Virus record (IMG/VR): IMGVR_UViG_3300044644_001125 | Coordinates: 248,001-312,000 of that record | Reading direction: 5' to 3' (one strand) | DNA length: 64,000 nt | In this document: piece after piece, positions 4,714 to 62,849 of the stretch | How positions within the stretch are numbered: the first letter of the stretch is position 1 | Layout: the number at the start of each line of letters is the position of its first letter | Notes under the pieces: generated by a model | Told to the model about the DNA's origin: nothing | The model's input: only the letters and a program-made list of their open reading frames with translations | Database searches by the model: none | Translations under genes and position numbers: made by a program

Positions 4714-4736
4714 TCCTAAAAGATAATGAACACAAG

Positions 4737-4760
4737 AAGCCAGTCTAGTACTGGCTTTTT
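4737..4760 (+). terminator. Intrinsic terminator
   Basis: AAGCCAGT-ctagt-ACTGGCTT followed by a T run. Confidence 0.75.
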
Positions 4761-4775
4761 AAATTGGAGACCTAT

Positions 4776-4880
4776 ATGAGAATTCACGAAATACTAGAAA
4801 ACACAACCAAACAATTTCCAATTCCATGGAACTCGGCATGGAAGCCGAGTGACCCCCTAGGACGGGTTGCGACGCGCTAG
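4776..4880 (+). pseudogene. 5' fragment of a fourth leader-bearing ART-like gene
   Basis: GGAG RBS and ATG 4776 give MRIHEILENTTKQFPI..., stop at 4878-4880; FHGT (ttc cat gga act, 4822-4833) lies in a shifted frame. Confidence 0.55.
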
Positions 4881-6340
4881 CGGAGCAGAGGACGCGAGGG
4901 TCATTTAATTGACATGAGCGGCAACCGTCTTACCTGTTATTATACAGACATAGCTTACAAAGACAACTTCAATTTAACTAAATAGAGATATGAGCACATC
5001 TACTAAAATCACTGGATACAAAACGAAATGCCTGTTAAATCAGGAGCAGATCGCTTTGTTCGATAAATCAGTGGATGGTTGTGTATTTGCATATAACGAA
5101 TTTCTTGCATTGGTGAACGCCGAATATGCCATAACTGGTAAGATTTCTACCAAATGCTGTAGTGTCAAAGAATTAAGAAATAACAACCCGTGGTTAAAAG
5201 AGCTATCTAGTAGAGTAATCGATGGATCTCGTCTTAATCTATTGGATGCATTTAGCCGGTTCTTTAGTAAGCAAAATGACTTCCCAGTATTTAAAAACCG
5301 GTATAGTAAGAAATCACTAAGACATGCCGGCGATTGTTACTTGTACATGAAAAATGGGTATATGTACGCAGTTATTCCAAAAATTGGTCATGTGAAGCTA
5401 TTGACTGATTTCTCGGATTCAGCTAATCAATTTGATTATACAACTGTTACTGGGATAACCTTATCCCAAGATAGTCTTGGAAACTTTTATGTCTCATTTC
5501 ATGCGAAATCGACTACTGCTCATTTACCAAAGACCCATAAATCAGTTGGTATAGACCCAGGTCTTACTACTTTTGCGACCTTGAGCACTGGTAAAAAGAT
5601 CAAGAATCCAAGATTTCGTGAAAGAACAGAAAACCGAATGAAAGCGCTTCAGCGTAAACTCGCGAAATGTACCAAGAACTCAATAAGATATAACAAATAT
5701 AAGAAACAAATAGCTGCACTTCATCAGAAATCGGCAAATCAATTAAATGACTTCCATAAAAAGACATCAACTAAAATAACCAAAGGCTACGACAACATCT
5801 ATATTGAGGAAACTCAGACCAAAAACATGATGTCTCGTGGTAAGAAAAAAACAAAAAGCCCTAGACGCCTAGGGAAATCATTCGCTCAAGCCGGAATCAG
5901 TGCATTCCGTGAAATCTTGATAAGAAAGGCGGAGCTTGTTGGTAAAAAGGTTCATCTTGTACCAGCTCGCAATACAACAAAAACATGCAGTAGTTGTGGT
6001 CACATCCACAACGATTTAACTCTTAAAGATCGGTCATGGACTTGCCCCGTATGCGGTATTGAACATGACCGAGACATAAATGCTGCCCGTAATATATTAC
6101 AAAAAGGGCAAGCTAATCGGTTTACCGGAGGTGGACTTGTTGCACAGGGCAACAATACCGGGTTACCTAATCAAAAAAGGACGCAGCAAAGCGGGTTAAC
6201 TCCCGTTAGCAAAAGTACCAGTTCAGCTACTAGCAGTACCAGTAGCCTACCTGTTATTTAAACGTCTATTCACGGTTTATCCCGTGAACCGAGGACACGA
6301 CGTCCGAAGTTCTCAGGGATGCCGCGAAATACCGACGGTT
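4831..6340 (+). mobile_element. Non-autonomous tnpB-only element (IS200/IS605- or IS607-related); ends approximate
   Basis: GC-rich hairpins on both sides of tnpB (ACTCGGC/GCCGAGT 4831-4850; TTCACGG/CCGTGAA 6269-6288); lies between two fragments of an ART-like gene; no tnpA adjacent. Confidence 0.65.
4990..6261 (+). CDS. tnpB: RNA-guided endonuclease TnpB
   Basis: RuvC-I VGIDPG, RuvC-II IYIEE, zinc finger CSSC..CPVC, RuvC-III DRDINAARNI; N-terminal HTH-like region. Confidence 0.93.
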   Translation: MSTSTKITGYKTKCLLNQEQIALFDKSVDGCVFAYNEFLALVNAEYAITGKISTKCCSVKELRNNNPWLKELSSRVIDGSRLNLLDAFSRFFSKQNDFPVFKNRYSKKSLRHAGDCYLYMKNGYMYAVIPKIGHVKLLTDFSDSANQFDYTTVTGITLSQDSLGNFYVSFHAKSTTAHLPKTHKSVGIDPGLTTFATLSTGKKIKNPRFRERTENRMKALQRKLAKCTKNSIRYNKYKKQIAALHQKSANQLNDFHKKTSTKITKGYDNIYIEETQTKNMMSRGKKKTKSPRRLGKSFAQAGISAFREILIRKAELVGKKVHLVPARNTTKTCSSCGHIHNDLTLKDRSWTCPVCGIEHDRDINAARNILQKGQANRFTGGGLVAQGNNTGLPNQKRTQQSGLTPVSKSTSSATSSTSSLPVI

Positions 6341-6360
6341 TCTGCCACCTATGCTGGTGC
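6120..6360 (+). ncRNA. Putative TnpB omega-RNA (scaffold plus guide running into the flanking gene); boundaries uncertain
   Basis: Low-complexity C-terminal tail of tnpB followed by GC-rich hairpins (6269-6288; GGAC-acgac-GTCC); this is the expected position for TnpB guide RNAs. Confidence 0.45.
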
Positions 6361-6706
6361 CGAACCAAGCGCAACCGGTGAAATTACCCATTTCAAACAA
6401 TGTGGTAATGTGATGCCACTATTAATCAAACCCGGAAAATCAATGGTTGTCGATGCGAAAGGTGCTAACTGGAATGACATTTACATCAAAAAATATCCTA
6501 TCTTGGAAACAACCAACGATTTCGCGGAATATGCCCAATCAAATGGCAAGGATACTTTGTATATCAAAAACGTAAGAGATAATAAGACTTGGCAGAAAGA
6601 TAAACTTCCTAGCACGGTTGTATTTGCATTTCACCCATCTTATATAAGATCAATTAATGCAAAATTCGACCCAGCCAATCACGAAGATGAAGATTTAATG
6701 GCATGA
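6332..6706 (+). pseudogene. 3' fragment of the interrupted ART-like gene
   Basis: PTVSATYA..GNVMPLLIK..DTLYIKNVRD..VFAFHPSYIRSINAKFDP matches the C-terminal half of the ART-like family; no good RBS or start codon. Confidence 0.6.
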
Positions 6707-6769
6707 TATTATCAACTGTGTTATACTACATTCTCAGAATAACAGTCAATTACCACGAGGAGAAATAAG

Positions 6770-7033
6770 ATGAACACGATTGAATTGTTTTTAGCAGACT
6801 TGGAAAAGCTATGCGAGACGCACAATATCCAATTAATGTCCCCACCAAGTATAGCACCATTAGGAAACTCACAACGTAACTATTTGACATACCCGGGTGG
6901 TATAATGTCGGAGATGTTTGTACAACAGCAGCAAGTGGATATTACCATAAATCTACGAGCAATGCTAGAAGGTAATGTCCATCACGAGACAGACAACCGA
7001 CGTATTCACCCAGCTTTGAAGCATGACTATTAA
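6770..7033 (+). CDS. Hypothetical protein
   Basis: GAGGAG RBS; upstream extended -10 TGTTATACT at 6719. Confidence 0.65.
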   Translation: MNTIELFLADLEKLCETHNIQLMSPPSIAPLGNSQRNYLTYPGGIMSEMFVQQQQVDITINLRAMLEGNVHHETDNRRIHPALKHDY

Positions 7034-7434: not shown

Positions 7435-7442
7435 TCTAGCAT

Positions 7443-7934: not shown

Positions 7935-10106
7935 ATGAGTTATGTAGATGCTTTTTATGAAAAAGATCGCGATATTATCCACGTAGTTGAACGTGATACA
8001 GATGGCATTCGCCATTACCGAGAATTTCCAGCAAACTATGTCTTTTATTACGAAGACCCAAATGGTAACCATCATTCAATGAAAGGTAAACCATTGTCTA
8101 GGGTTAAAAGTAAAACCCACAAAGAACATCATAAGAATATTGCTATATTTGGTCAAACCAAGAAGTTATATGAAAGTGATATCAATGTTACCTATCGTTG
8201 CCTTGAAGACCATTACCTTAACGCAGATGCACCTAAACTCAATGTCGCGTATTTCGATATCGAGACCAGTATGTGTCCTGATCGTGGGTATGCCGCACCA
8301 GACGATCCTTTTATGCCAATTGTTTCTATTGCTGTATATCTTCAGTGGTCTGAAACTATGATTTGTTTGGCAATTCCACCAAAACATATGAGTATAAAAG
8401 AAGCTGAAGAGCAAGTAGCTGAGTTTGAGAACACGTTTATCTTTAAAACAGAAAAGGAATTATTAGATACATTCCTTACTATTATCGAAGATGCTGATGT
8501 ATTAAGTGGTTGGAATTCTGAATCATTCGATATTCCATATACCGTTAATCGAGTTGCTAAGGTTTTAAGCAAAAACGATACTCGTCGATTCTGTTTATGG
8601 GATCAATCTCCTAAGAAACGTGAATTCGAGAAGTTTGGTAAGGTTTCGACTACTTTCGATTTGGTTGGTCGAGTTCATATGGATTACTTGGACATTTATC
8701 GCAAGTATACCCATGAAGAAAAGCCATCTTATCGATTGGATGCTATTGCTGAATATGAATTAGGTGACCATAAAACTCCGTATGATGGTACATTAGAACA
8801 GCTATACAATCAAGACTTTAAGACTTTTATCGAATATAACCGACAAGACGTTGCACTGTTAGATAGAATGGATAAGAAGTTGAAGTTTATGGATTTGGCT
8901 AATACGACTGCTCATGGTTGTACTGTATTGTTACCAACTACGTTAGGTTCCGTTGCAGCTATTGAACAAGCTATTATCAATGAGGCGCATAGTAAAGGGC
9001 AGATTGCACCTAATAGAAAGCCACGTAATGATAATGAAAACACGCAAGCTGCTGGTGCGTATGTTGCTTATCCCAAAAAAGGTCTACATGATTGGGTTGC
9101 TTCATTAGATATCAACTCGCTGTATCCTAGTACGATTCGTGCACTTAACATGAGTCCAGAGACTATCATCGGACAGTTAAGACCAGTGGCAACTGATAAG
9201 TTTATTGCAGATCAAATGGCTACAGGTAAGAAGTTTGCTTCATGCTGGGAAGGTGTATTTTCGACTTTAGAATATGATGATGTTATGTCAAGAGATTCAA
9301 ATCGTATGCTTACTATCGATTGGGAAGAAGGTAGCAGTGATGAACTTAGTGCTGCTCAAACCTACGATTTAATTTTCAAATCTGGTCAATCATGGATGTT
9401 AAGTGCAAATGGTACTATCTTTACTTTTGAAAAAGAGGGAATTGTACCTGGGCTATTGAAAAAGTGGTACGCTGATAGGCAAGGTATGCAAGCGAAAATG
9501 AAAATTGCACGCGATGCCGGACTCGACATCGAAGAACGATACTGGAGTATTAAGGAGCAATTTTGTAAATTATTGCTAAATAGTTTATACGGTGCTTTGC
9601 TCAATAGCGGTTGCAGGTTTTTTGATAAACGTATTGGCCAAAGTACAACGTTGACTGGTAGGTCTATCACTAGACACATGACAGCTCAGGTTAATGAAAT
9701 TGTATGCGGTGAATATAATTATCTAGGAAAATCAATACTTTACAATGACACGGATTCGCTAGAATCTGGATCTATCATTCGAACAACGAGTGGAGATTTG
9801 ACTATCGAAGAATTGTTCGATCGTGGTAATTTGAAATGGAATTCTGGTGATAAAGAATATTCACGCGATGATGATATACGAGTAATACACTGCGATGGGA
9901 CTGACAACTTGTCATATACCAATTATAATTATGTTTATCGACATAAAGTGTCTAAAAGACGATTTAAAATTATGACAGCGAATGGAAAAACGGTAACAGT
10001 AACCGAAGATCATAGTGTTATGATCAAAACGGATACTGGATATATTGAAAAGAAACCGATGGATATTAAACCAGGTGATGTGGTAATGACTATTAATACA
10101 GTATGA
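7935..10106 (+). CDS. DNA polymerase family B (gp43-like), N-terminal part fused to the split intein N-half
   Basis: Exo I FDIET, Exo II GWNSESFD, Exo III YNRQD; motif A DINSLYPS; motif B KLLLNSLYG; motif C YNDTD then intein sequence. Confidence 0.95.
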   Translation: MSYVDAFYEKDRDIIHVVERDTDGIRHYREFPANYVFYYEDPNGNHHSMKGKPLSRVKSKTHKEHHKNIAIFGQTKKLYESDINVTYRCLEDHYLNADAPKLNVAYFDIETSMCPDRGYAAPDDPFMPIVSIAVYLQWSETMICLAIPPKHMSIKEAEEQVAEFENTFIFKTEKELLDTFLTIIEDADVLSGWNSESFDIPYTVNRVAKVLSKNDTRRFCLWDQSPKKREFEKFGKVSTTFDLVGRVHMDYLDIYRKYTHEEKPSYRLDAIAEYELGDHKTPYDGTLEQLYNQDFKTFIEYNRQDVALLDRMDKKLKFMDLANTTAHGCTVLLPTTLGSVAAIEQAIINEAHSKGQIAPNRKPRNDNENTQAAGAYVAYPKKGLHDWVASLDINSLYPSTIRALNMSPETIIGQLRPVATDKFIADQMATGKKFASCWEGVFSTLEYDDVMSRDSNRMLTIDWEEGSSDELSAAQTYDLIFKSGQSWMLSANGTIFTFEKEGIVPGLLKKWYADRQGMQAKMKIARDAGLDIEERYWSIKEQFCKLLLNSLYGALLNSGCRFFDKRIGQSTTLTGRSITRHMTAQVNEIVCGEYNYLGKSILYNDTDSLESGSIIRTTSGDLTIEELFDRGNLKWNSGDKEYSRDDDIRVIHCDGTDNLSYTNYNYVYRHKVSKRRFKIMTANGKTVTVTEDHSVMIKTDTGYIEKKPMDIKPGDVVMTINTV
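9756..10103 (+). other. Split intein N-fragment (116 aa, Ser1)
   Basis: Starts SLESGSIIRT..LTIEELF immediately after YNDTD; block B VTEDHSV; ends KKPMDIKPGDVV then a stop. Confidence 0.9.
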
Positions 10107-10113: not shown

Positions 10114-11844
10114 ATGATGAATGAATTGGAAGAACGTAATTTAACAGTACTAACATTTAAAAAGAAGTACCCACGGCAGTACAAGTACTTGCTTGAATAT
10201 TACGGCGGGGTTCGTGTATTTGACAAAGCAGCGGCGGTGTGTTTATATTTACGAGGGGCTAAACCTCCGACATGCTCTATTTGTGGGAAATTACTTGCGG
10301 TTGATAAATGGTCTAGGAATTCGTCATATTCGCCAAGGTGTAATACTCACTCGAAAACTAACCCTGATACTATAGTAACTCGTGAGATATTAGAGGAAAA
10401 TAACCCACATGGGTATACTATTGTTGACGTGCCACTATATGCGTCACCATCGACCTATATAAAACTACACTGCCATAATCATGGTGATTTTTCACAACCA
10501 GCGTCTAATTTCCTTAAAGGTATGCGGTGTAATAAGTGCTATGATCGTAGTACTGAAATTCCAGTAAAAGTCGATTATAATACTTGGTTGGAGCGTAGTA
10601 TTGGACATTTTGGTGATTTTTATGATTATTCAAAAGTCAGTTTTACAAGAGTGGAACAGGATATGATAACAATAGGATGCCCAGATCATGGAGATTATGA
10701 GCAACGTGCATCGACTCATATGCGCGGCCATGGTTGCCCAAAATGTGCAAACGCATTGAGTAGTACAAATCTAACTCGATCGACTGCAGAATTTATCAGG
10801 TTGGCAAATATCAAGCATTCTGGAAAATACCAATACCCGAATACAATATATAATGGTTCTCGTTCTATTGTGGAAATTGAATGCCCGATACACGGGCCAT
10901 TTAATCAAGTCGCGTATTACCATCTTGCTGGGAATGCGTGTCAGCAGTGTGGTTATGAGATATCAACAAGCAGGTCCGCTGCAGAAAAAGAATTGGTTGC
11001 GTGGTTGGAAGATACGGGTATTTCTAACGTAACCCACTCTAATAGGATTTTCAGTTACGAGTTAGACGTTTATCTACCAGATTATAACATTGCAATCGAA
11101 TATAATGGATTGCATTGGCATTCTTCCAATAGTAAAGATTTAGATTGGAAATATAAATCTGCACACTTGTACAAGACCACTGAGTGTGAAAGTCGAGGTA
11201 TTCAACTATTTCATATCAACGAATCAGAATGGGGATTGAATGCAACGAAAAAGGAAATATGGAAATCGATTATACTTGAAAACCTACAGGTCGCACCAAC
11301 GATATTAAAGATTACTGACTGCGATATCATAATTGTGGATTCTAGCACCGCAATCGAGTTCATGGAAGAGAATCATATTTATGGTTACTTTCCTGGATCA
11401 TCGCATATTGGTTTAGAACGTGATGGTGTACTGGTTGCATTAGCCACCTTTGCCAAATCTAATGATAGAAATGCGAAACCAAATACGTATGAACTGGTAA
11501 GGTATGCCACCCTAATATACACAAGCATACCATCCGCGTTTAGTGTAATACTTTCGCATTTCACACAGGATAAGACTGGTGCATTAATTGCATATGCTGA
11601 TCGTAGATTCGATAACGGTGCTTTATTTGAATCCAATGGGTTCGTGTTAGATTCAATTGAAAAACCAACATATCAATATATCAAAGGTCAAAAAACGTAC
11701 CATCGTTGCAAATTCACCAAATCAATTGCGGAAAATACATTACCAATATTTGACAAAAGCAAAACTTTGGTTGAAAATATGTATGATAACAAATACCGCA
11801 GAATGTGGGATTGTGGCCAATTGATTTATATTTTACAATTTTAG
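10114..11844 (+). CDS. Free-standing homing endonuclease-like protein (zinc-ribbon repeats, Vsr/DUF559-like PD-(D/E)XK domain, C-terminal GNAT-like domain)
   Basis: Own GAGGAG RBS; three CxxHG...CxxC repeats; ELDVYLPDYNIAIEYNGLHWHS..GIQLFHINESEW; C-terminal YELVRYA..AYADRRF..WDCG. Confidence 0.85.
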   Translation: MMNELEERNLTVLTFKKKYPRQYKYLLEYYGGVRVFDKAAAVCLYLRGAKPPTCSICGKLLAVDKWSRNSSYSPRCNTHSKTNPDTIVTREILEENNPHGYTIVDVPLYASPSTYIKLHCHNHGDFSQPASNFLKGMRCNKCYDRSTEIPVKVDYNTWLERSIGHFGDFYDYSKVSFTRVEQDMITIGCPDHGDYEQRASTHMRGHGCPKCANALSSTNLTRSTAEFIRLANIKHSGKYQYPNTIYNGSRSIVEIECPIHGPFNQVAYYHLAGNACQQCGYEISTSRSAAEKELVAWLEDTGISNVTHSNRIFSYELDVYLPDYNIAIEYNGLHWHSSNSKDLDWKYKSAHLYKTTECESRGIQLFHINESEWGLNATKKEIWKSIILENLQVAPTILKITDCDIIIVDSSTAIEFMEENHIYGYFPGSSHIGLERDGVLVALATFAKSNDRNAKPNTYELVRYATLIYTSIPSAFSVILSHFTQDKTGALIAYADRRFDNGALFESNGFVLDSIEKPTYQYIKGQKTYHRCKFTKSIAENTLPIFDKSKTLVENMYDNKYRRMWDCGQLIYILQF

Positions 11845-15588: not shown

Positions 15589-15617
15589 TTGACTTCTATT
15601 ATCTTTTAGACTAAACT
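15589..15617 (+). promoter_or_regulatory. Sigma70-type promoter with an ATTATCTTTTAG box in its spacer
   Basis: TTGACT-17-TAAACT; box at 15598-15609. Confidence 0.6.
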
Positions 15618-26157: not shown

Positions 26158-27948
26158 TTAAACTCGACCTACAACGATGTTAATAACACCATATTCACCA
26201 TCAAAATCCTCAATGGCTTTACCAATCACTGTTCCAATTTTAGGGTGTGTGTCTGAAATAGCATACCCATTACTACCACTAACCATCAAATCACCTTTTT
26301 TTACAGTTCCAGTAACTTTACATGGTACTTTACCTTGTAGTGCTACTGGAACAACGAACTCGCCAGATGCCATTGAATTCATCAAATAAGCAGGTTGTGT
26401 CGAAACGACACCAGCGACTCTTGGTGATTTACTCGAACCGATTGTGACTTCAAACTCACCACCAAACTCAACTACTGTACCAGCAGGATATTGACTATCT
26501 GCTATATAGTTTTCAGCCAAGTCAGCATATTGCGCTTGTGTTGCAACACCATTGAATTCAGTTGCATAGATTTTGTTGAATTTATATGCGGTTGAACCAA
26601 GATTAACTGATTGCTTCGTATAGATGGTTGCTTTAGAATCCCAGTTCAGCAAACCAGCAGCAGTTGATGTGATAAATGATAATGATGCACCAGTAGTGCC
26701 CATATCCACATCTAAGTTACCAGTCGTTGATTTAATTGTTGGTGCTGATGTTGATACTGACAATTTAAGTTGGCTACCGTTATCTGGACCGACTGTAATA
26801 CCAGTATTTGCAACATACAGCATATCTAAAGTACCAAGTGTTTTTAGATTAGACGAAACTACAGTTGGATTTAATGATGTACCAGTCAACGTAGTTGCGT
26901 TTGCTGGTGGGTCGATATCTCTAGTTCCATCAAACAACACACCATTGATACGACGTGCAGTTGCTAATTGTGTTGCAGTATTTGAATTACCGGATAAGTT
27001 AGCACCTCTGAATTCTTTTGCTTGTACGATACCAAACGTGCTTAGTGATGTATCAGGTGCAGTGACAGTTCCAGTAACATTACCAACTAAGTTTGCAGTA
27101 ACAGTACCAGCACTAAAAGATCCGTTTCCATCCCTGACAACAACCGTACCTGGTGAAGAAGTAGAAGCAGCATTTAATGTCCAAATTTGTTCTGAAGTTC
27201 CATCAAAATCATTACCTAAAAGATAATTGCCTGCTTTTAGTAACTTAGTTGTACCAGCCTTGAGCGTAATTGAGCTTTCACCAGTAAACCCAACACCATT
27301 GATGGTAACTGTATTCTTCAATCTAGTAGCAGTATCAGCATTACCTGAAAATGCACCTTTCATTGAAAGTACACTAGAAATCGTTAATCCAGCAACTAAG
27401 TCTAAAAAACCATTGATTGGGTTTGATGCAGCAATAGTAAACGCAGTAGCTGAACAAACAGCAATTGCAACGTCATTTACTGTTAAAATTAATATTGGTC
27501 TAGTTGTACCGGTAGAATCAACCACGCTAGTTGCTTTAGCTCTGGTAGTACCAAAGTTAACAACAGATTCGGGTCCAATAAATTGCCATTCAAAATTATG
27601 ATAGGCATGTAATTGGGATGATTTTGTATCGAACCATAACTGGCCTGGTGTTGGTGTTAACGGTGCGGTGTCAGTTACGGTAGCTGAACCAATTGGACTC
27701 CAATTTGAACCATTGTATACATTTAAAATATTTGAGTTCGTATCAAACCAAGTTTGACCAGTAACTGGTCTATTAGGAGCACCATCATTAGCAAAGTTTT
27801 CTAAAAGATAAAGGAAGTTTTCATTTTGAATTTCACCATATCCTACATAGTTTCTACCAACTAATCCAATATTAGAATCAACGTTAAGTTGACCATCTTG
27901 TAAGGTCGTAAATTCAGTTCCATTGAATTTATTAATTGTATAAGGCAT
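26158..27948 (-). CDS. Tail fibre protein with a C-terminal autoproteolytic chaperone-like domain
   Basis: Shared N-module; ATARRINGVLFDGT fibre motif; YADLAENY..ALQGKVPCKV. Confidence 0.75.
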   Translation of the reverse strand: MPYTINKFNGTEFTTLQDGQLNVDSNIGLVGRNYVGYGEIQNENFLYLLENFANDGAPNRPVTGQTWFDTNSNILNVYNGSNWSPIGSATVTDTAPLTPTPGQLWFDTKSSQLHAYHNFEWQFIGPESVVNFGTTRAKATSVVDSTGTTRPILILTVNDVAIAVCSATAFTIAASNPINGFLDLVAGLTISSVLSMKGAFSGNADTATRLKNTVTINGVGFTGESSITLKAGTTKLLKAGNYLLGNDFDGTSEQIWTLNAASTSSPGTVVVRDGNGSFSAGTVTANLVGNVTGTVTAPDTSLSTFGIVQAKEFRGANLSGNSNTATQLATARRINGVLFDGTRDIDPPANATTLTGTSLNPTVVSSNLKTLGTLDMLYVANTGITVGPDNGSQLKLSVSTSAPTIKSTTGNLDVDMGTTGASLSFITSTAAGLLNWDSKATIYTKQSVNLGSTAYKFNKIYATEFNGVATQAQYADLAENYIADSQYPAGTVVEFGGEFEVTIGSSKSPRVAGVVSTQPAYLMNSMASGEFVVPVALQGKVPCKVTGTVKKGDLMVSGSNGYAISDTHPKIGTVIGKAIEDFDGEYGVINIVVGRV

Positions 27949-38200: not shown

Positions 38201-41200
38201 TTAACCTTGGTATATACATACGCTTTACCTTGGTCGATAATTGAACTATCTGCATTTGGACTAGTTATAACTAGTGTTGAACCAGTTGGATTGATAGCAA
38301 TCGCATGTCCAAATTTATCACCAGTAGCATCACCAACCATATCATCAAGTTTAACAACCGAACTGTCATTCGATGCGTATATATAAACTGAGCCTTTTGG
38401 CTGATTTTCACCAACTGGATTTCCAACAACTAACGTAGATCCATCAGAAGTCATTACTAACGATTTACCAAATTCGTCCATATCAGTGCTGTTTTCTGGT
38501 AATGTATAAGTGGCGTCACCAAATACCCATTCTGAATTTGTATATCTATAAGTGTATACAATACCATGGTTATTTGTTAACGTGCTATCACCTGGGTGAA
38601 CTGCTGCAGAAACAGCTAAAAGATAATCGGTATCCGATGTTTTACCAAGTGCAACCGCTGTTCCAAACTGAACAGTATTCTCTAAATCTGGACTAACAAA
38701 TGAAGTTGAATATCTCCAGTTATTATCGTAATATTCATACACTGAAATAACACCTTGATTGGTTATATTACTCGGTGTACCAGTAGAATCTGATATGATA
38801 TTTGATGCCTCCTTCCACTTTGTTTTATCAGCAGTGGTATCATTGATACTATCGCCGATAATTTCAACAATAGATTCCAACAATGCATTTGAAGTTTTTA
38901 CAATAGCACCAATTGGATATATTGCAGTATTAGTATACGCACCTCGGTAATTACTACGAATATGAGATGCACTAGGTGACCCAACAATCAAGAATTTATT
39001 GTCTGGTGATATCGCCATCGATTTACCGAATGAACCATCCAATGAGCTACTACCAGTACGAATCCCTGAAATTGGTTCAACTGATTGATACCAATCCAAC
39101 CCAGTAGTTCCAACCGAATAAACTTCAATTCTATTAGAACCAGGAATACTGGTAATAACTTGGTTTAATGTTTTTGCATACACCGTGGTTGTACCAACAC
39201 CAATTGGATTATCACCATAAACTGTAGGACTAACTACTGAATATTGGTCTTTCTTTTGTGATACTTCCCACTTATCAGAATCATTCGCATCAACCCACAG
39301 TTTAGCACCGACTGGCAACGTAGCAGCATACAAATCATCAATATCAGAGTATGATTTATATCTAGCTTTCTTGAAGGTACAAGCATAAATTGGTTTGTTT
39401 TGGTTTAATGTTGGGATTGTAGATAGCAATGAACTATCAATAGAGACAGTATTCCAAGTCACACCAACTACTTTAAATATACCAGAAAACGCAGTGATTG
39501 TTCCTAGTGGTCTGACAGCAAATACATCACCAACTTCATAGGTATGTCTACTAGAAAGTTCAAAATCAATTGTACTGGTTTCTGTGATGTTTACTACGCG
39601 CAACGCAGTATCATTGAATCTAAAGACATTCCAAGAATAATCATCGAATGTTACCCAGATATTGGCATTGTCTTTAATTGCACGGATATCAAGATTTAGA
39701 ATATCATCAATAGTTTTAACCATATATGAAACGTGTTTAGTGTTAACATACCCAGCAGTTCTCGATGGTTCTGTTTCATATGATAACTTATTAATACCAA
39801 CTGTATTACTTGGAGTTAATGTGAAATCAGATGACTTGATTTGGTACGCAATACCATCAGATACGGATGTATCAGTAACTAGTAATGGTTGTGGGTTAAG
39901 TTTTATTTTATTCTTCTCGATATAAAACTCAAATTCTTCGATTGCATCCACCCCACCAAACTGGCCAACTCTAAATGCCCATTCTTCATTAAGAACAATA
40001 CTAGAATCACCAGATCTGCTTAGTTTATCAAATACCTTGGTTACTGCATTAATTGTACCTTTTTCACGAATAAATCCTTGATATAGCTGGAATTGAGTAA
40101 CTGGATCTTCTGCTAAATCTTGCAAATAACCTCTAGGTTGATACCCAATGGCATGCCTTGCTAGAGTTCGTTGTGATTCACCAATACCTTCCGCAGTAGT
40201 ATCGTAATATTCATCAAATTGGTTAATCTTATAATCAAAGTTAGAAACCAATTCCTTTGTTGGGTTTGTATCAAGTTTAGACCAAACTGCATTGTCAAAT
40301 GATTCGGTGCTTGTATGTGATTTAATACAAGTCCAATTTGTTGAACGATAAGCAACAATATCACCTAGTTTGTAATCTTTATATTGTTGCCAAACAACAA
40401 TATTAACATTGTCGAATAAGAATCCTGGGCTTGTGTAATCACCATCCCAATCAACTGTTCTAAATCCCTGTGATTTGATTCTACCTTGTCTATAACCTGT
40501 AGTTTTATCATAGATAACATCGTTGAAAACCGTTCTATCAGAAAATACGGTTACATGCTCTTTTAGAACACAGTACATATTAAGGTAATAAATCCCATCA
40601 GTTGTCGAATCTGGTGTGATGACAATATTTTGGAAAGTTCTAGTTACATTAAGTTGTTCAATCGGGAATACTTGACCATTACTTTTTAAGATTTCGTAAT
40701 CATAAAATCCATCAGTTAAGCTATCAACAACACCACCATTCATATTAATTTCAATTCTACTTGAAATTGGACTTAATGAAATAAGAGATCCAGCTGCCCA
40801 ATTATGCTTCGTCCAGAACATGAATTCTTTACAACTCGTTGTCCAGTTAATAGGCACTCGGTTTTCAGCATCATATCCACTGAATACAAATCCGATAGAT
40901 TTCAAGTAAACTTCATAACCCAACAAGAAATCAACTACTTCTTGAATAGATTCCAAGGTAGTTCCATATAGCATTTGTTTAATAGTAAACTTATTGAATG
41001 ATTTACGATTTTTAGCTACAACTTCGCCGGTTATCGGCAAATTTGACAGCAACTTCCAGTAATCGTGCTCATCATTAAATGTCGTACTTGAATTGGTTTT
41101 TAATGCTCTGTAAAAATGCTGTTCATATCTTACGATTTGACCATTCGCATACGTTACATTTGGTTCCCAATCAGTATAGGCCGCACTAACACCACCAACA

Positions 41201-55169: not shown

Positions 55170-56018
55170 ATGGCTGACCACGTGGTACCAAAAGCAAAGT
55201 ATTTGACAAACAAAGAGTTACTAAAAGCAATACACGCAAGTAAAAATACTTTTTGTTCGTACACAAAACCTGAATATGGATTCTATGACTGTATCGTAAC
55301 TGATATCGGTGAAATCAATGAAGATACAATCAACGATGCTAAACAAAGCCGTGCTACTCGATTATCAAGAGCAGCACATGAAAAAGCCCAACTAGAAGCT
55401 GGTAAGAAAATCCCAGCAATCGAATTTGAAGTCGATTACACCACCATTTGTGAAAATGATTTAGTATTCAGAATCATGACGTTTGACCACATTCCCCTAC
55501 AGCCAGACCGTAAGAAAACGGTTAAAACTGTTGCTGATGCTCGTGCCAAAGTAAACTTCCCACCTTTCCAACATTGGAAATTCAATGAGAATAAAGAGTT
55601 AGTTTGTGTTGGTAAAAGTCATTGGGATGGTGATGTCGATACTGGTCATTTCAGTATCACAAAAGGTCAGATGTCTAACTTGCTAGGTAAGATGTTAATG
55701 AAATTGGCTGAAAGATATTCTTCACGTAGCAACGTTCGCGGATATACCTATAATGATGAGATGCGAGGCCAGGCAGTACTTCAGTTAACGCAGGTTGCAC
55801 TCCAATTCGACGAGTCAAAATCATCTAATCCATTCAGTTTCTATACACAATGTTGCACGAACGCCTTCTTACGTGTGATAAACATTGAGAAAAGAAATCG
55901 TGAAATTCGTGATGACATCCTTGAAAGTGCAGGTTTAAACCCTAGTCATACTAGAATGAATTCGGATACCTATGGAGAAAGAATGAATGATGGTTATACT
56001 TGGATTGATGTAGACTAA
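55170..56018 (+). CDS. Late transcription sigma factor (gp55-like)
   Basis: YLTNKELL; KLAERYS..RGYTYNDEMRGQA..QFDESKSSNPFSFYTQ..NAFLRVINIEK. Confidence 0.85.
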   Translation: MADHVVPKAKYLTNKELLKAIHASKNTFCSYTKPEYGFYDCIVTDIGEINEDTINDAKQSRATRLSRAAHEKAQLEAGKKIPAIEFEVDYTTICENDLVFRIMTFDHIPLQPDRKKTVKTVADARAKVNFPPFQHWKFNENKELVCVGKSHWDGDVDTGHFSITKGQMSNLLGKMLMKLAERYSSRSNVRGYTYNDEMRGQAVLQLTQVALQFDESKSSNPFSFYTQCCTNAFLRVINIEKRNREIRDDILESAGLNPSHTRMNSDTYGERMNDGYTWIDVD

Positions 56019-56039
56019 AAGATAATTGTTCTACTAATT

Positions 56040-56863: not shown

Positions 56864-56892
56864 ATTACACCTCGTTAGTTGAATGAGCCGTT

Positions 56893-56974
56893 AATATATA
56901 GTATAATGGACCTATAGTCAATACCTAAAAGATAATTAAATCACAATTGACTTCCATTATCTTTTAGTTATAAT
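56893..56974. promoter_or_regulatory. Divergent sigma70-type promoter pair containing an inverted pair of CTAAAAGATAAT boxes
   Basis: Minus strand TTGACT(56921-16)-17-TATATT; plus strand TTGACT(56947)-16-TATAAT; boxes at 56925 (+) and 56956 (-). Confidence 0.65.
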
Positions 56975-57005
56975 ACCAGCAACTTAACCCAACTAGGACA
57001 ATTAT

Positions 57006-58686: not shown

Positions 58687-60456
58687 ATGATAACAATTAA
58701 GAATCTAACTGCAAAAAACTTCCTATCTATTGGGAATCAAACTCAATCCGTTTCCTTTGATAATGGGTTATTGACCCTTGTACTAGGCGAAAACCTTGAC
58801 ATGGGTGGGCCTGAAAAACGGAACGGCTGTGGTAAAACGGTAATGGTTAACGCATTAAGTTACGCATTATTCGGTTCTGCGTTGACTAATATCAAGCGTG
58901 AAAACCTTATTAATAAGATAAATGGTAAGAATATGCTTGCCACTGTATCATTTGACAAGGATGGTGTTGAATACAAGATAGAACGTGGTAGAAAACCAAA
59001 TATCTTGAAGTTTTCTATCAATGGAAAAGACCAAGTGCTACAAGATTTGGATGAAAGTCAAGGTGATTCAAGAGAAACTCAAAAGGCTATTGAAGAAATC
59101 TTAGGTATGAAATTGGAGATGTTCAAGCACATAGTTGCTCTGAATACTTACACTGTTCCATTCTTAGGAATGAAACCAGGTGAACAACGAGAAATCATTG
59201 AACAGTTACTTGGTATTACCCAATTGAGTGAAAAAGCTGATTCGTTAAAGGTATTAGTAAAAGAATCAAAAGATTCGATTGCGACTGAAAACACTCGCAT
59301 TACTACAGTACAAGCATCGAATGACCGTATTCAACAAAGTATTGAAGCCTTAATTCGTAAAGAAAAGATGTGGAATGAAACTCGTGATAGAGCAGTTGTT
59401 TCTATCAACAAAGATATTGAACGATTAAGTCCAATTGACATTGATGCCGAGATTCAAGCACAACGAGAGTATACTGTTTGGCATGCTAGTAAGAAAGAAC
59501 GTGATAGTATTAACTCATTAATTGCAAAGCAATCTACTGCAGTTGAACGAGAAGAACGTGTTCTTAAATCACTAGAGCAAGAGTTAGTTCACTTAGCAGA
59601 ACATAAATGCCATGCCTGTGGTCAAGAGTTACATGACGACAAACATGAACAGTTATTAGCTACTAAAAGTGAACAATACCAAACTAGTTTAAAGTCAATT
59701 GCTTCACATAAAGAAGAATTAGACTTGTTAGATGAAGCTATCATTACTTTAGGTGAGATTGGTCCTTGTCCAACTGTTAAGTATGATACCCTAGAACAAG
59801 CCTTGAATCACAAGAATACAATTGCTTCACTAGAGAAAGAGTTGGCTAGTAAGTTAGCTGAAACCAATCCCTACTTAGAACAAATCGAAGACTTGAAAAC
59901 GACTGCTATTCAAGATGTTTCATGGGACAAAATGAATGAATTAGTCAGAGTTAAAGAGCACCAAGACTTTCTCTATAACTTGTTAACTAACAAGAATAGT
60001 TTTATCCGTAAACGTATCATCGATCAAAACTTGGCATTCTTGAATCAAAGACTTTCTGTTTACTTAGGTCAATTGGGTCTACCACATCAAGTAGAATTCC
60101 AAAATGATTTATCTGTATCGATTACCCAATTAGGTCAAGATTTAGATTTCTACAACCTATCTCGTGGTGAGATGAATCGTTTAATCTTGTCTTTAAGCTG
60201 GTCTTTTAGAGATGTTTGGGAGAACTTATACCAACCAATCAACTTGTTATTCATTGATGAGTTGCTAGATTCTGGTTTAGATTCATCTGGTGTTGAATGT
60301 AGTATCTCTGTTCTAAAACAAATGACTCGTGAACGTAACAAGAATGTGTTCTTGATTTCACATAGAGATGACTTAACCAGTAGAGTTAATCACGTGTTGA
60401 AAGTTATCAAAGAAGGTGGGTTTACTCATTATGCTACTGACGTCGATATTGTCTAA
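58687..60456 (+). CDS. Recombination ATPase subunit (gp46/Rad50/SbcC-like)
   Basis: KNFLSIGN, Walker A NGCGKT, zinc hook CHACG, signature LSRGE, Walker B LFIDE, ISH. Confidence 0.92.
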   Translation: MITIKNLTAKNFLSIGNQTQSVSFDNGLLTLVLGENLDMGGPEKRNGCGKTVMVNALSYALFGSALTNIKRENLINKINGKNMLATVSFDKDGVEYKIERGRKPNILKFSINGKDQVLQDLDESQGDSRETQKAIEEILGMKLEMFKHIVALNTYTVPFLGMKPGEQREIIEQLLGITQLSEKADSLKVLVKESKDSIATENTRITTVQASNDRIQQSIEALIRKEKMWNETRDRAVVSINKDIERLSPIDIDAEIQAQREYTVWHASKKERDSINSLIAKQSTAVEREERVLKSLEQELVHLAEHKCHACGQELHDDKHEQLLATKSEQYQTSLKSIASHKEELDLLDEAIITLGEIGPCPTVKYDTLEQALNHKNTIASLEKELASKLAETNPYLEQIEDLKTTAIQDVSWDKMNELVRVKEHQDFLYNLLTNKNSFIRKRIIDQNLAFLNQRLSVYLGQLGLPHQVEFQNDLSVSITQLGQDLDFYNLSRGEMNRLILSLSWSFRDVWENLYQPINLLFIDELLDSGLDSSGVECSISVLKQMTRERNKNVFLISHRDDLTSRVNHVLKVIKEGGFTHYATDVDIV

Positions 60457-60474
60457 AAGATAATCGAATCTACT

Positions 60475-60499
60475 AAGCCCAGTTAATTCTGGGCTTTTT
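60475..60499 (+). terminator. Intrinsic terminator
   Basis: AAGCCCAG-ttaatt-CTGGGCTT-TTT. Confidence 0.8.
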
Positions 60500-60526
60500 G
60501 TTGTCTAAAAGATGATTGAAAAACAG

Positions 60527-60554
60527 TTGACATTCCAAAATAAGCCTGTATACT
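60527..60554 (+). promoter_or_regulatory. Sigma70-type promoter for the DUF1566-like triplet
   Basis: TTGACA-16-TATACT. Confidence 0.7.
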
Positions 60555-60587: not shown

Positions 60588-60884
60588 ATGAAATTCGAAA
60601 TAGCACCTAAATCAACTGAGATAGAATCCAACTGGTTTGATGCAAAACTCTATTGCTTCTCCCTTAACATAGATGGTAAGACTGGTTGGAGATTACCAAC
60701 AAGGGCAGAACTAAATGAAATTTATGAATCTGATAATGATTTCGTTATTTGCACCTACTACTGGACATCTGCTGAATTTAGCGGCACCGGTGCTTGGACT
60801 CAACTATTCATTAATGGGATCCAGAACTTCCGCACGAAGGATTACGACAAAAATCAGGTTAGAGCAGTAAGGGACTTAGCATGA
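60588..60884 (+). CDS. Short DUF1566/Lcl-like (CLec-fold) protein 1
   Basis: W.DA..YC..L...GWRLPT..EL..YWTS..AW...F..G.Q....K....VRAVR. Confidence 0.8.
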   Translation: MKFEIAPKSTEIESNWFDAKLYCFSLNIDGKTGWRLPTRAELNEIYESDNDFVICTYYWTSAEFSGTGAWTQLFINGIQNFRTKDYDKNQVRAVRDLA

Positions 60885-61177
60885 AATTTGAAATAGCACC
60901 GAAAGAAACAGAGACCCAAGCCAATTGGGATGATGCCCGTTTGTATTGCTTTGCTCTTAATATAGATGAGAAAGTTGGCTGGAGATTACCTACTATTAAA
61001 GAGTTAAACTATATAAATCGTGTGATTAATGATCTTTCAACCGAAGATTACTGGTCATCAATAGAACGACCAGACAAAAGATACGCAGAATGCTATACCA
61101 CAATCGATGGTGGTTATACGGTCAATACATTAAAACACGATTTAGGCTATGTTAGCGCAGTAAGGGACTTAGTATGA
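60881..61177 (+). CDS. Short DUF1566/Lcl-like protein 2
   Basis: MKFEIAPK..GWRLPTIKEL..YWSS..VSAVRDL; ATGA overlap. Confidence 0.8.
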   Translation: MKFEIAPKETETQANWDDARLYCFALNIDEKVGWRLPTIKELNYINRVINDLSTEDYWSSIERPDKRYAECYTTIDGGYTVNTLKHDLGYVSAVRDLV

Positions 61178-61473
61178 ACTTTGAAATAGCACCCAAAGAA
61201 TACGAGATACGAGGAAACTGGGATGATTCCAGATTCTATTGCTTTGCTCTTAATATAGATGGAAAATCAGATTGGAGATTACCAACTAAAGAAGAACTTA
61301 ACGAAATCTTCCAATCAGCACATGATTTCGAGGATGGCTCGTATTGGTCTTCTACTCCTTCCGATGTTGATGAGGTAGGCGTGCGGGTTCAAATATTCGA
61401 TACTAGTGGATTCGAATACTCCGCAATAAAGTCCAGTCCCTACGGATATACCAGAGCCGTCAGAACAATCTAA
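61174..61473 (+). CDS. Short DUF1566/Lcl-like protein 3
   Basis: MNFEIAPK..DWRLPTKEEL..YWSST..TRAVR; ATGA overlap. Confidence 0.8.
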   Translation: MNFEIAPKEYEIRGNWDDSRFYCFALNIDGKSDWRLPTKEELNEIFQSAHDFEDGSYWSSTPSDVDEVGVRVQIFDTSGFEYSAIKSSPYGYTRAVRTI

Positions 61474-61548
61474 TCGTTGCGAGCCACAAACCAGTAAAAT
61501 CCCACCAGATAAATAGGTTCACTACCAACCAAAACAAGTGAACCTACA

Positions 61549-62070
61549 ATGACCAGCAAATCAAAAAACAAAGGCAATACATGGGAACGTGAGATTGCAA
61601 ATCACTTATCCTCCATTTACAATCTAAAATTTTTAAGATGCCAAGGTAGCGGAGCATTCGTCGGAGGTAAAAACACACAGCGAAAAGCAGTATTAGATGC
61701 TGGTCAAATCCAAAGTTTCAAAGGTGATATTATCCCACCAACCGAATGGACTTCCTTTAACAGTGAAGCCAAGAACTATGCAGATTTTCCTTTTCATCAG
61801 TTATATTCAGGTGAAGTCAAACAACTTGAAACTTGGCTAGGTCAATTGGTTCAAGTGGCAGATCCAAATGATATGAATATCCTCATGTTTAAGATCACAC
61901 GTAAAGGAAAGTACGTTGCGGTTGAATCTGACAAAGGATGGGACATATCACATCCTCATACCAATTACACTTCAGTTAAGTTTGGCAACTGGCAAATCTT
62001 TGATTATGATTCTTTTTGGCAACATAATCATCAATTAGTCAAGCAATTAAGCACTATTTCGCCAGACTAA
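61549..62070 (+). CDS. Holliday junction resolvase-like PD-(D/E)XK nuclease (Hjc type)
   Basis: SKNKGNTWERE..SGA..GDI..EAKNY. Confidence 0.75.
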   Translation: MTSKSKNKGNTWEREIANHLSSIYNLKFLRCQGSGAFVGGKNTQRKAVLDAGQIQSFKGDIIPPTEWTSFNSEAKNYADFPFHQLYSGEVKQLETWLGQLVQVADPNDMNILMFKITRKGKYVAVESDKGWDISHPHTNYTSVKFGNWQIFDYDSFWQHNHQLVKQLSTISPD

Positions 62071-62103
62071 ATATCATTTTATTATTTCTCAAAAACTAAT
62101 ACT

Positions 62104-62523
62104 ATGAAAGATAAGGTAATCGTATATACTGATGGTGGGTGCATTCCTAATCCCGGAAAGGGTGGTTGGGGTGCTGTACTTATGTGCAACAACAAAGAAA
62201 AAGAACTCTTTGGTGGTGTAGATGGTACTACTAATAACCGCATGGAACTAATGGCAGCAATCCAAGCATTAAATGCCTTAACCAGACCATGTGATGTCAC
62301 AATCTATAGTGATTCAAAATATGTTGTAGATGGAATCACTAAATGGTATCCCAATTGGATTAAGAACGGTCGTACCAATTTCGTTAATCCAGACTTATGG
62401 CATGCACTGGCTGCAGCAGCTAAACCTCACAATGTCACTTGGCAATGGATCAAAGGCCATTCAGGAATTCCTGGCAATGAACGTGCCGATGAACTGGCTA
62501 TGCGAGCTATTGAGTATTGTTAA
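62104..62523 (+). CDS. rnhA: Ribonuclease HI
   Basis: [46 protein letters not shown]. Confidence 0.95.
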
Positions 62524-62611
62524 CTGTTTGTTGACTATTATTTTCTTAATAGTTAACAATAAGTGCTGTTTTTCTCTACTAAATAGAGTATAATCAATCT
62601 ATATCAGAACA

Positions 62612-62801
62612 TTACCGAGACCATCTCAAATATATTTTCACAAAAGTGTTGACAACAGGGATTAACTAAGTTACAATTAATCATACTAAAGAATTACCCA
62701 AAAGCAGTTTACCGAGACCATCTCAAATCCATACCGACACCAAGTCTATATTTTCTTTTACTTACAGAGACCATCTCAAATCATTACCGACACCAAGTCT
62801 A
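62612..62801 (+). repeat. Direct repeats: TTACCGAGACCATCTCAAAT x3 and TACCGACACCAAGTCTA x2
   Basis: Copies at 62612, 62709 and 62762; the last two are 40-nt composites. Confidence 0.9.
62649..62677 (+). promoter_or_regulatory. Sigma70-type promoter with no ORF downstream
   Basis: TTGACA-17-TACAAT. Confidence 0.75.
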
Positions 62802-62849
62802 CTCGCACAAAAGCAATTACTCAATTATCTTTTAGGCACCCGCCAAACT

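Follow-up and report, generated by a model that had tools for sequence, protein, structure and literature searches.

A dispersed, lineage-specific 12-bp box in an uncultivated freshwater jumbo phage and its possible role as an operator of early promoters

The C1 repressor of phage P1 acts on dispersed operators and the repressor of phiC31 on conserved intergenic repeats, and in both cases 15–20 sites serve temperate immunity. According to iteron/DnaA-box logic, one protein can bind origin arrays as well as promoter sites, and at oriE of T4 an early-promoter transcript lies beside iterons. In mycobacteriophage L5 (Cluster A), the repressor gp71 recognizes an operator and additional "stoperators" (PMC9283540; PMC6550527), and T4-type phages carry promoter-early stem-loop (PeSL) cassettes (PMC2839356). 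How jumbo phages that use host RNA polymerase regulate their genes is poorly understood, and for uncultivated freshwater lineages next to no information exists. Here we describe a 12-bp box, CTAAAAGATAAT, in such a phage, which was found in lake metagenomes of ~20 studies.

Abundance, invariance and conservation of the box

The 64-kb stretch of DNA analysed here (the window) contains 17 exact copies of the box compared with 0.02 expected. In the whole phage genome (327 kb) there are 139, against 0.1–0.5 expected under Markov models of orders 1–4 and none for the reversed control word, and the box is the commonest 12-mer of this genome. Non-coding and gene-edge DNA, 14% of the genome, holds 117 of the 139 boxes (~111–117 intergenic copies versus 0.03–0.07 expected), and the density is ~33-fold higher between genes than within them. 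Counted in this way against a Markov background, and separately for intergenic and coding DNA, the recurrence claimed in an earlier, sequence-only reading of the window is confirmed and is stronger than claimed. All exact boxes listed there (4716+, 15598−, 27216+, 56015+, 56925+, 56956−, 60453+, and 62824−) are correctly placed; a coding box at 38616 and an array at 63406–63911 had been missed (Table 1). The coding copy at 27216, 7 nt past which lies CTTTTAG, the complement of the first seven bases of the box, had been taken as a sign of chance hits, but the genome contains 22 coding copies (11–12 sense, 10 antisense), far above expectation. The 11/12 matches in the ART leaders are present and encode R-Y-L-L-D as described, but as paralogous coding sequence they add no support; they are a single event that was copied, not three.

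Table 1. Boxes and associated features in the window (strand as given; a point marks features without a single strand).
Feature	Position	Strand	Context
11/12 matches, C at position 12	616..2041 (616, 1428, 2030)	-	encode R-Y-L-L-D in the N-termini of ART-PolyVal genes, MEIRYLLDKLKL
Exact box	4716..4727	+	3 nt past stop of ORF 3250-4713; hairpin 4737-4757 9 nt on
Exact box	15598..15609	-	in 17-nt spacer of promoter TTGACT(15589)...TAAACT(15617), upstream of ORF 15645-16154
Exact box	27216..27227	+	coding DNA, antisense to ORF 26158-27948
Exact box	38616..38627	+	coding DNA, antisense to 4529-aa ORF 32218-45807
Exact box	56015..56026	+	bases 2-4 form TAA stop of late-sigma gene 55170-56018; terminator 56040-56060 13 nt on
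Facing box pair	56925..56967	.	56925+ / 56956-, bracketing -35 TTGACT of plus-strand promoter 56947-56974
Exact box	60453..60464	+	includes stop of sbcC (58687-60456); terminator 60475-60496 10 nt on
One-mismatch variant CTAAAAGATGAT	60505..60516	+	10 nt before promoter TTGACA-16-TATACT (60527-60554)
Non-coding RNA gene	62649..63300	+	promoter TTGACA-17-TACAAT (62649-62677), leader, Polynucleobacter-1 motif, conserved 3' part, terminator hairpin ~63278-63300
Exact box	62824..62835	-	leader of non-coding RNA; plus strand reads ATTATCTTTTAG
Array of 8 exact boxes and 1 variant	63406..63911	.	63406+, 63587+, 63668+, 63710-, 63756-, 63809-, 63863-, 63900-; variant 63826-

The word is non-palindromic, with C1 and G7 invariant. 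Positions 1–9 and 11 show at most five variants each against the 139 exact copies, tolerance being confined to positions 10 and 12; with the tolerated variants included, the genome holds ~215 boxes, and a variant also occurs in the junction of ~30 tandem Lcl_C/DUF1566 genes. Operator sets are rarely so close to perfectly invariant, and the same invariance would also fit recent spread. The flanks, representing 114 unrelated contexts, have an information content of ~0, and downstream there is weak conservation of the form nGAnnnA. Since 102 of the 139 boxes have unique flanks, no copied unit larger than 12–15 bp exists. Between co-directional genes, as called like promoters and terminators by our own simple models, 35 boxes point forward and 32 backward (p = 0.81), and such indifference to orientation is more in keeping with a DNA site than with an RNA signal or promoter.

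In the close relatives G001 and G010, only 7 substitutions were found in 720 aligned box positions compared with ~5.7% in the ±60-nt flanks, corresponding to a ~5-fold lower rate of change (binomial P = 3e-11), and the site in G010 orthologous to the variant at 60505 is an exact box. The box is absent from G009, G006, and G002–G005, although orthologous promoters and terminators persist there, and a complete 364-kb relative lacks it. G009 retains orthologs of the terminators that follow the late-sigma gene and sbcC, and there is no box at either. As these relatives possess the same terminators and promoters without it, the box is a lineage-specific overlay and not a part of either element.

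Because the 12-mer is invariant, under selection, and embedded in more than 100 unrelated contexts, a single trans-acting factor, as already suggested by the sequence-only reading, is the most economical explanation. Alternatively, the box could be a selfish or recombination-spread short repeat resembling PeSLs and lacking a dedicated binder, whose invariance would stem from recent spread or gene conversion. In line with this, the box is restricted to one lineage and almost free of variation, repeats abound in the genome (24 promoter cassettes, the Lcl_C/DUF1566 genes, and four RNA modules), and some indels that distinguish G000 from G001 have a box at their end (e.g., genome 96887 and 90788). 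However, boxes are not enriched near the homology breakpoints of these two genomes (8 of 46 lie within 15 nt of a box versus 7.4 for random intergenic positions; p = 0.47), and a recombination junction was rejected as a general explanation. The predominance of unique flanks also speaks against a spreading repeat, as do the promoter registers and pair spacing described below, which imply function, and the late-sigma stop, where the box arose together with a short insertion and a synonymous change of GAT to GAC, which does not resemble the insertion of a cassette. We regard such spread as an unlikely origin of the pattern; if it nevertheless applied, the box would still be a precise lineage marker.

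Promoters, box pairs and gene ends

The sequence-only reading had also placed the box within early-type promoter regions, and its overlap with sigma-70-type promoters proved to be real: 29 boxes lie inside promoter footprints, as opposed to 16.7 ± 3.8 for random intergenic positions, and they keep preferred registers. Measured from the start of the −35 element, forward boxes prefer −14 (8 cases) and reverse boxes +14 (9 cases). The upstream register, box-N2-TTGAC, positions the box just ahead of the −35, whereas in the spacer register, TTGACN-N8-ATTATCTTTTAG-AAT, the TAG of the box forms the first half of the −10. At strong TTGACA-17-TAGAAT promoters, forward boxes occupy ~−50 to −39 and reverse boxes ~−21 to −10, with the TTGAC of the −35 intact. 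Other boxes lie in the initial transcribed region or face each other in pairs across the −35. In the window, box 56956 sits in the spacer of TTGACT-16-TATAAT (56947–56974), and its partner 56925 lies between this plus-strand promoter and a divergent minus-strand promoter (56921–56893), abutting the −35 of the latter. Boxes are often attached to the 24 early-promoter cassettes of the genome, which have a conserved 5′UTR and an inverted repeat on both sides of the −10, but about half of these cassettes lack one. Among inverted box pairs, 19 face each other and 2 diverge, with a spacing peak at 26–28 nt, and several direct arrays have spacings near 32–33 nt.

With moderate confidence, we propose that one sequence-specific DNA-binding protein recognizes the box, which would serve chiefly as an operator of early promoters. 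Once bound, the protein would obstruct RNA polymerase at host-type (sigma-70-like) early promoters, so that promoter boxes would be operators for the temporal shut-off of early genes. Only ~26% of the intergenic boxes, however, fall into predicted promoter footprints, and repression of initiation can therefore not be the whole story. The remaining boxes, which occupy short intergenic spaces, gene ends, and arrays next to four paralogous non-coding RNA genes, would load the same protein to form roadblocks, to provide cooperative or looping partners, or to offer a platform for binding.

The promoter registers could also be read without a separate factor, if the box were a promoter-architecture element for host RNA polymerase (a UP-like A-tract ahead of the −35 and a T-tract ahead of the −10), perhaps adjusted to ADP-ribosylated alpha. 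Alt and ModA of T4 modify Arg265 of alpha and thereby alter the use of UP elements, and the phage analysed here encodes several ART-PolyVal ADP-ribosyltransferases; the forward and reverse positions at strong promoters would also suit such an element. UP elements, however, are degenerate A/T tracts located at −40 to −60, whereas C1 and G7 are invariant here and only ~12 boxes lie upstream of a −35, and a UP element was rejected on these grounds. Moreover, three quarters of the boxes are outside promoter footprints, about half of the early-promoter cassettes are boxless, and relatives have the same promoters without the box. We consider this explanation highly improbable.

Nor does the box behave like the one-directional promoter of a phage-specific middle or late class with GATAAT as its −10, to which we give very little credence. 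GATAAT is contained in the box, TTGACA is found exactly 17 nt upstream in a few cases (genome 89447 and 92943), where the box provides the −10, the downstream nGAnnnA shows its weak conservation, and the phage encodes a gp55-like late sigma factor. However, 32 of the 67 boxes between co-directional genes oppose transcription, facing pairs 16 nt apart would have to be convergent promoters, several boxes run straight into a terminator, and no additional sigma factor of the Sigma70_r4 type was found. The structural-gene block (window 20–55 kb) contains no intergenic box, which also speaks against a T4-type late promoter, and late genes are instead preceded by T4-like ATAAATA or TATAAATA. A T4 MotA box was rejected as well: in T4 middle promoters it lies near −30 and replaces the −35, whereas the boxes described here occupy the positions given above next to an intact TTGAC.

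Coupling of the box to termination, the other role assigned to it by the sequence-only reading, is not supported. Of 65 intergenic terminators, only ~10 are accompanied by a box at a distance of up to 15 nt, in 5–6 cases just before the stem and in 5 just after it, and the terminators of G009 exist without any. The boxes 9–13 nt before the hairpin after 4716 and the terminators after 56015 and 60453 are real, but they do not support a general link, and boxes at gene ends precede the next promoter equally often. In 22 cases, a forward box overlaps a same-strand stop codon. Tight intergenic packing accounts better for this, in combination with the sequence of the box, which with a following TGA provides stop codons in all three frames.

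Non-coding RNA modules and box arrays

Downstream of the box at 62824, at a distance of 79 nt, the non-coding RNA matches the Polynucleobacter-1 motif (Rfam RF01718; 62903–63053). The genome contains four paralogous modules of this kind, all of which score 68–80 bits with the RF01718 covariance model (gathering threshold 37). Together they carry 29 boxes, 5–9 each, in mixed orientation and with irregular spacing; in the window, the array is interspersed with ACATACATTTTA and CATCTATAAGA repeats. The genes flanking the four modules are not conserved, GC skew follows gene orientation, and no sign of replication initiation emerged for the origin-like cluster suggested by the sequence-only reading. 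All four leaders retain a reverse box, which is unpaired in the consensus fold and is accompanied by a hairpin with two compensatory pairs. According to contig-level read data, RNA-library contigs cover the non-coding RNA including box 62824, but not the adjacent array.

These features would suit a box that acts at the RNA level, where the one or two unpaired AUUAUCUUUUAG of the leader would base-pair as a 12-nt seed with CUAAAAGAUAAU at the stop codons and 3′ ends of mRNAs, which would constitute an sRNA regulon. The conserved unpaired leader box beside its compensated hairpin, the RNA-library contigs, and the forward boxes on same-strand stop codons are compatible with this. Transcribed boxes show no sense bias, however (35 versus 32 between genes, 11–12 versus 10 within them), so that half of the sites would be identical and not complementary to the RNA's own box. 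Many boxes furthermore lie in promoter spacers, upstream of a −35, or in arrays without RNA coverage, and facing pairs of fixed spacing are a DNA-level feature. A seed target was rejected as a general explanation, and we judge the RNA-level reading very unlikely.

If the box is instead a protein-binding site, the modules might indicate a larger scheme, in which a regulon of 140–215 sites on one 12-bp word is read by a protein without a recognizable DNA-binding domain, and the arrays beside four ~600-nt RNA copies link early shut-off to an RNA/iteron module, possibly to several RNA-primed replication origins. This extension is speculative and in our view rather doubtful.

The putative binder and comparison with known systems

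Most likely, the box-binding protein is phage-encoded, having been acquired by, or having evolved in, this narrow lineage alone. We infer protein binding, repression, and the phage origin of the binder alike. Six-frame scans of the genome gave no match to HTH_3, HU/IHF, Bro-N, Sigma70_r4, or ParB_N, the HTH_3 search, whose control was positive, not being exhaustive for repressors. A MotCF scan had no match in the phage, and its control likewise had none in any genome. Family scans detected no DNA-binding domain in 30 proteins adjoining boxes, and the predicted folds of two small candidate binders are of low confidence. Phage_integrase and Resolvase were not found in six-frame scans with positive controls, and the phage looks strictly lytic. 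The clean site set, with one exact word in more than 100 independent contexts and boxless sister lineages, makes this a directly testable system, from which, if the model is confirmed, a new DNA-binding fold may emerge.

As in iteron systems, each of the four modules has an array of 5–9 boxes directly downstream of a structured RNA that is driven by a promoter, and the same word occurs at promoters, but here no initiator gene or skew signal was found, and the arrays are mixed in orientation and irregular in spacing. The genome resembles PeSL-bearing phages in its repeated early-promoter cassettes with an inverted repeat around the −10 and a conserved leader (PMC2839356). The box, however, is a separate 12-mer that is present on about half of the cassettes and also elsewhere, and it is no marker of indel boundaries (p = 0.47). 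With the P1 C1 and phiC31 systems, in which a single regulator is responsible, it shares many scattered, conserved sites, single and paired, over promoters and intergenic spaces; these phages are temperate, whereas the phage described here is a jumbo phage of lytic type whose sites are seven to ten times as numerous.

Of the known systems, the operator/stoperator system of L5 comes closest, although neither its orientation rule nor its lysogeny features were found here. Sites of L5 are aligned with transcription and no longer function in reverse orientation, whereas the box obeys no orientation rule (35:32). L5 has "more than twenty" sites compared with 139 exact ones (~215 with tolerated variants), the phage described here has no detected integrase, resolvase, or recognizable repressor, and the facing pairs and the arrays next to non-coding RNA genes have no counterpart in L5. 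In both phages, however, one asymmetric word (12–13 bp) is present in many near-identical copies throughout the genome (PMC9283540; PMC6550527), a few copies lie in promoters and the majority in the short spaces between genes, where they often touch stop or start codons, and the word varies between related phage lineages. If confirmed, the model would extend the logic of one repressor with many scattered sites from temperate mycobacteriophages to a lytic jumbo phage.

Abundance and sequence of the box

The 12-base word CTAAAAGATAAT (hereafter the box) is present in 17 exact copies in the window, where 0.02 are expected, and in 25 copies against an expectation of 0.94 if one mismatch is allowed. 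The sequence-only reading had placed boxes in promoters, before terminators and at an origin-like cluster and suggested that one phage factor may connect them; all box coordinates and contexts it gave are correct, and a second coding copy at 38616, antisense to a very long open reading frame, as well as a dense array at 63406-63911 had escaped it. The window comprises bases 248,001-312,000 of a 327,256-bp IMG/VR virus record, and this jumbo phage genome is essentially complete, because the contig of a relative joins the record's end to its start. Counted across the genome against Markov models of order 1-4, and in intergenic versus coding DNA, as that reading had proposed, the box lies far above expectation: it is the commonest 12-mer, with 139 exact copies where 0.1-0.5 are expected, and the reversed control word is absent. 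According to a simple gene model of our own (427 genes, 86% coding), 117 of these copies lie between genes or overlap a gene edge, the intergenic expectation being 0.03-0.07, and 22 lie inside genes, which amounts to an approximately 33-fold higher density in intergenic DNA.

Positions 1-9 and 11 of the box are essentially fixed (at most five variants each, compared with the 139 exact copies), position 10 tolerates G (45 copies) and position 12 tolerates C (21 copies) or G (8 copies). The only signal in the flanks is a weak nGA...A on the 3' side. Grouping of the 139 copies at 60% flank identity gives 114 unrelated contexts, of which 102 are unique, and duplication of a larger unit therefore does not account for their number. 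Most of the G10 variants stem from junctions between approximately 30 small, often tandem Lcl_C/DUF1566 paralogues, where the word encodes the C-terminus ...RDLKDD* and its G makes the ATG of the next gene; these paralogous copies were left out of the statistics. Many of the paralogues end in ...VRDLKD(D/N)*, with the overlap of stop and next start (ATGA) inside the variant box. A few members have kept the box although it is shifted by one frame, which points to a constraint acting at the DNA level.

The nearest relatives of the family-B DNA polymerase are found in PA5oct-like phages, at only 48% identity; these are also the nearest isolates, and a megablast search with the region gave no match among deposited phages. 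Near-identical DNA is present in lake and freshwater metagenomes from approximately 20 studies. The gene set includes a gp55-like late sigma factor, SbcCD, RusA, RNase H and ART-PolyVal ADP-ribosyltransferases, and family scans of the phage genome found neither an integrase nor a resolvase. The DpdA-like homolog (see the table) hints at a 7-deazaguanine modification of the phage DNA. MRIHEIL-type starts occur in further genes of the phage; together with the N-terminus MEIRYLLDKLKL of the tandem paralogues at 546-2775 they may, we assume, direct proteins into the capsid, as do the leaders of T4 Alt and of the T4 internal proteins.

Features of the window and of the phage genome, with their coordinates
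Feature	Window	Genome	Remarks
RNA/array modules L018-L021	62550-63950	34.3-35.5 kb (reverse strand), 164.9-166.3 kb, 232.4-233.6 kb	
Examples of GCGAGCACCGNTAGGTGCGAGC	7569	224680, 324198, 255569 (= window 7569)	
Family-B DNA polymerase, two ORFs	7935-10106, 11851-12837		Split by HNH-type homing endonuclease
HNH-type homing endonuclease	10114-11844		576 aa; interrupts the polymerase
Lcl_C/DUF1566 paralogues	60588-61473	116.8-118.7, 157.8-161.0, 224-232, 324-326.5 kb	
Tandem paralogues with common N-terminus MEIRYLLDKLKL	546-2775		At least the first (546-1418), on whose scan the assignment rests, is an ART-PolyVal ADP-ribosyltransferase
TnpB/Cas12f-like (OrfB_IS605) genes, two	4990-6261	136646-137929	Each ~110-270 nt 3' of a box
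Single 4529-aa ORF	32218-45807 (minus strand)		Within structural block; one antisense box
Three-gene cassette	56065-57206		149 aa, DUF6717 (123 aa), 66 aa; behind double-box divergent promoter
Early-promoter cassettes, 24		77-101 kb	Conserved leader CCTTAACAAAGCACTACGGAG
DpdA-like queuine tRNA-ribosyltransferase homolog (phrog_887)		73448-74209	Box array and tandem repeat upstream
77-aa basic ORF		198794-199027	Ribosomal protein bS21-like by eye

Placement at promoters, gene ends and terminators

Two registers predominate at promoters: box-N2-TTGAC (eight cases) and TTGACN-N8-reverse box (nine cases), in the latter of which the TAG of the box forms the first half of a TAGAAT-type -10 element. 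Other promoter boxes are located 10-12 nt upstream of the -35, at +5 to +20, or, in forward orientation, within the spacer. Promoters with boxes include those at window 56947-56974 and 15589-15617, and a box-N2-TTGAC case at genome 90738. Predicted promoter footprints fully enclose 29 intergenic boxes, compared with 16.7 +/- 3.8 for random intergenic positions. The early-promoter cassettes consist of a TTGACA-17-TAGAAT-like promoter with an inverted repeat around the -10 and a conserved leader, and about half of the 24 carry a box or its variant. Because the positions vary relative to the promoter elements, yet nearly always stay within the polymerase footprint, we infer that a putative box-bound protein would more likely repress than activate transcription. 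An UP-like element cannot explain why the C and G of the box are invariant. That the box is itself a late promoter is excluded, since late genes are preceded by TATAAATA, a rare word with seven copies, or by ATAAATA, but not by the box.

Inverted neighbors face each other in 19 cases and diverge in two, mostly at 26-28 nt from start to start, and several direct arrays have a spacing near 32-33 nt. Between co-directional genes, 35 boxes are oriented along transcription and 32 against it. This lack of orientation, together with the facing pairs and with boxes that run straight into terminators, excludes a directional promoter. It also bears on the idea that the box is the target of an RNA seed: as transcribed boxes show no sense bias, the idea lacks support for the boxes in general, but it may apply to a subset, since the box copy in the RNA leader of the modules described below is unpaired.

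Twenty-two boxes overlap a stop codon on their own strand, and the box combined with TGA supplies stop codons in all three frames. Among 65 intergenic terminators, five to six boxes lie 6-15 nt before the stem, three of these being the sites in the window, and five lie 7-11 nt after it. The coupling of the box to termination that had been proposed is thus not borne out: the association is minor, and terminators do not need the box, because orthologous terminators in the relative G009 lack it. We attribute the association to the packing of intergenic regions. Two other parts of that proposal, a single factor and control of promoters, are plausible.

A second repeated element, GCGAGCACCGNTAGGTGCGAGC, has 23 copies in the genome, all of them intergenic. 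A start codon usually follows it at a distance of 10-20 nt, and a box often precedes it by 8-25 nt.

Modules of non-coding RNA and box arrays

Four paralogous modules of approximately 1.3 kb each contain 29 of the box copies. Each begins with sigma-70-type promoters, followed by a leader that contains a reverse box or two, a hairpin supported by two compensatory pairs, the Polynucleobacter-1 motif of Rfam (68-80 bits), approximately 250 conserved bases, a terminator, and finally an array of boxes and two other short repeats. The encoded RNA has a length of approximately 600 nt. Its Polynucleobacter-1 motif has until now been listed only for Burkholderiales and freshwater metagenomes. In two metatranscriptome runs, RNA-library contigs span window positions 62617-63215 and none of 63216 to 64000; being contigs of an RNA library, they fit, albeit weakly, an RNA that is transcribed and a downstream binding platform that is not.

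The modules may be origins of replication. A promoter-driven RNA beside arrays recalls iteron origins and T4 oriE. GC skew tracks gene strand only, and the data examined contained no evidence of replication from the modules. At L038, a locus in a box-negative relative, the RNA leader (8480-8620) has ten tandem copies of the 14-nt unit TTACCCTAAAGCAG, which occupy the place of the box-containing leader units.

Lineage distribution, candidate binders and known systems

Two close relatives possess the box, with 45 copies in the 72 kb of G001 and 21 in the 51 kb of G010. Aligned boxes differ by seven substitutions in 720 positions and two deletions, whereas their +/-60-nt flanks differ by 5.6-5.8% (binomial P = 3e-11 for substitution in box versus flank). 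No box was found in G006 (complete, 364 kb), in G002-G005 or in G007-G008. G009 (23 kb) also lacks it, although its sbcD is 91% identical at the protein and approximately 76% at the DNA level, and it keeps the late-sigma and sbcC terminators, the following promoter and the non-coding RNA, all without the box. The box, shared with G001 and G010 but missing from other relatives with the same elements, therefore constitutes a lineage-specific layer over a conserved regulatory scaffold. No other dispersed over-represented 12-mer replaces it in G002, G006 or G009; an apparent 9-copy motif in G009 proved to be a single 14-nt tandem repeat. An origin of the box in a host or prophage was rejected, as the facing-pair pattern had no match among 185,579 bacterial and archaeal genomes. 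Lineage restriction and near-perfect identity would also suit a recombination repeat, but HSP boundaries between the phage and G001 do not cluster at boxes (p = 0.47), and this explanation is not supported.

All these alternatives fare worse than a site in the DNA that a single protein recognizes, to which the sequence data point because the word is exact, kept by selection, independent of its flanks and blind to the direction of transcription, and also because promoter registers and pair geometry are preferred and boxes occur in arrays that appear untranscribed. Six-frame genome scans with HTH_3, HU/IHF, Bro-N, Sigma70_r4 and ParB_N were all without match, as was one with MotCF, for which the control was uninformative. 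Thirty proteins encoded beside arrays or behind double-box promoters were scanned with Pfam and PHROG, which revealed no DNA-binding regulator or domain; the families encountered were DUF2201 metallopeptidase/VWA-like, MazG-like pyrophosphatase, DpdA-like and TnpB-like proteins, homing endonucleases, DUF5710 and DUF6717. A 66-aa basic protein behind a double-box promoter (genome 89943/89971) gave a sub-threshold TEA-domain match only and had no Atlas neighbor; its model (pLDDT 59) and that of a duplicated 64-aa basic protein with a possible helix-turn-helix by eye (pLDDT 57) are unreliable. PDB sequence searches with three candidate binders found no match. The three-gene cassette is present in box-positive G010 and missing from box-negative G009 and G006; its DUF6717 protein is unlikely to be the specific binder, because the family is widespread in bacteria at approximately 50% identity. 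Phyletic profiling left 273 of 427 genes without a homolog in G006, too many to narrow the candidates.

The early-promoter cassettes of this phage, but not its box, are similar to the PeSL cassettes known from T4-type phages (PMC2839356). For the box itself, the nearest analog is the repressor of L5 and other Cluster A phages together with its operator and stoperators, more than twenty sites that share an asymmetric 13-mer and are located in promoters and short intergenic spaces (PMC9283540). Orientation dependence and a temperate setting, both defining features there, fail in this phage, and the box system would therefore work like the L5/Cluster A system rather than belong to it.
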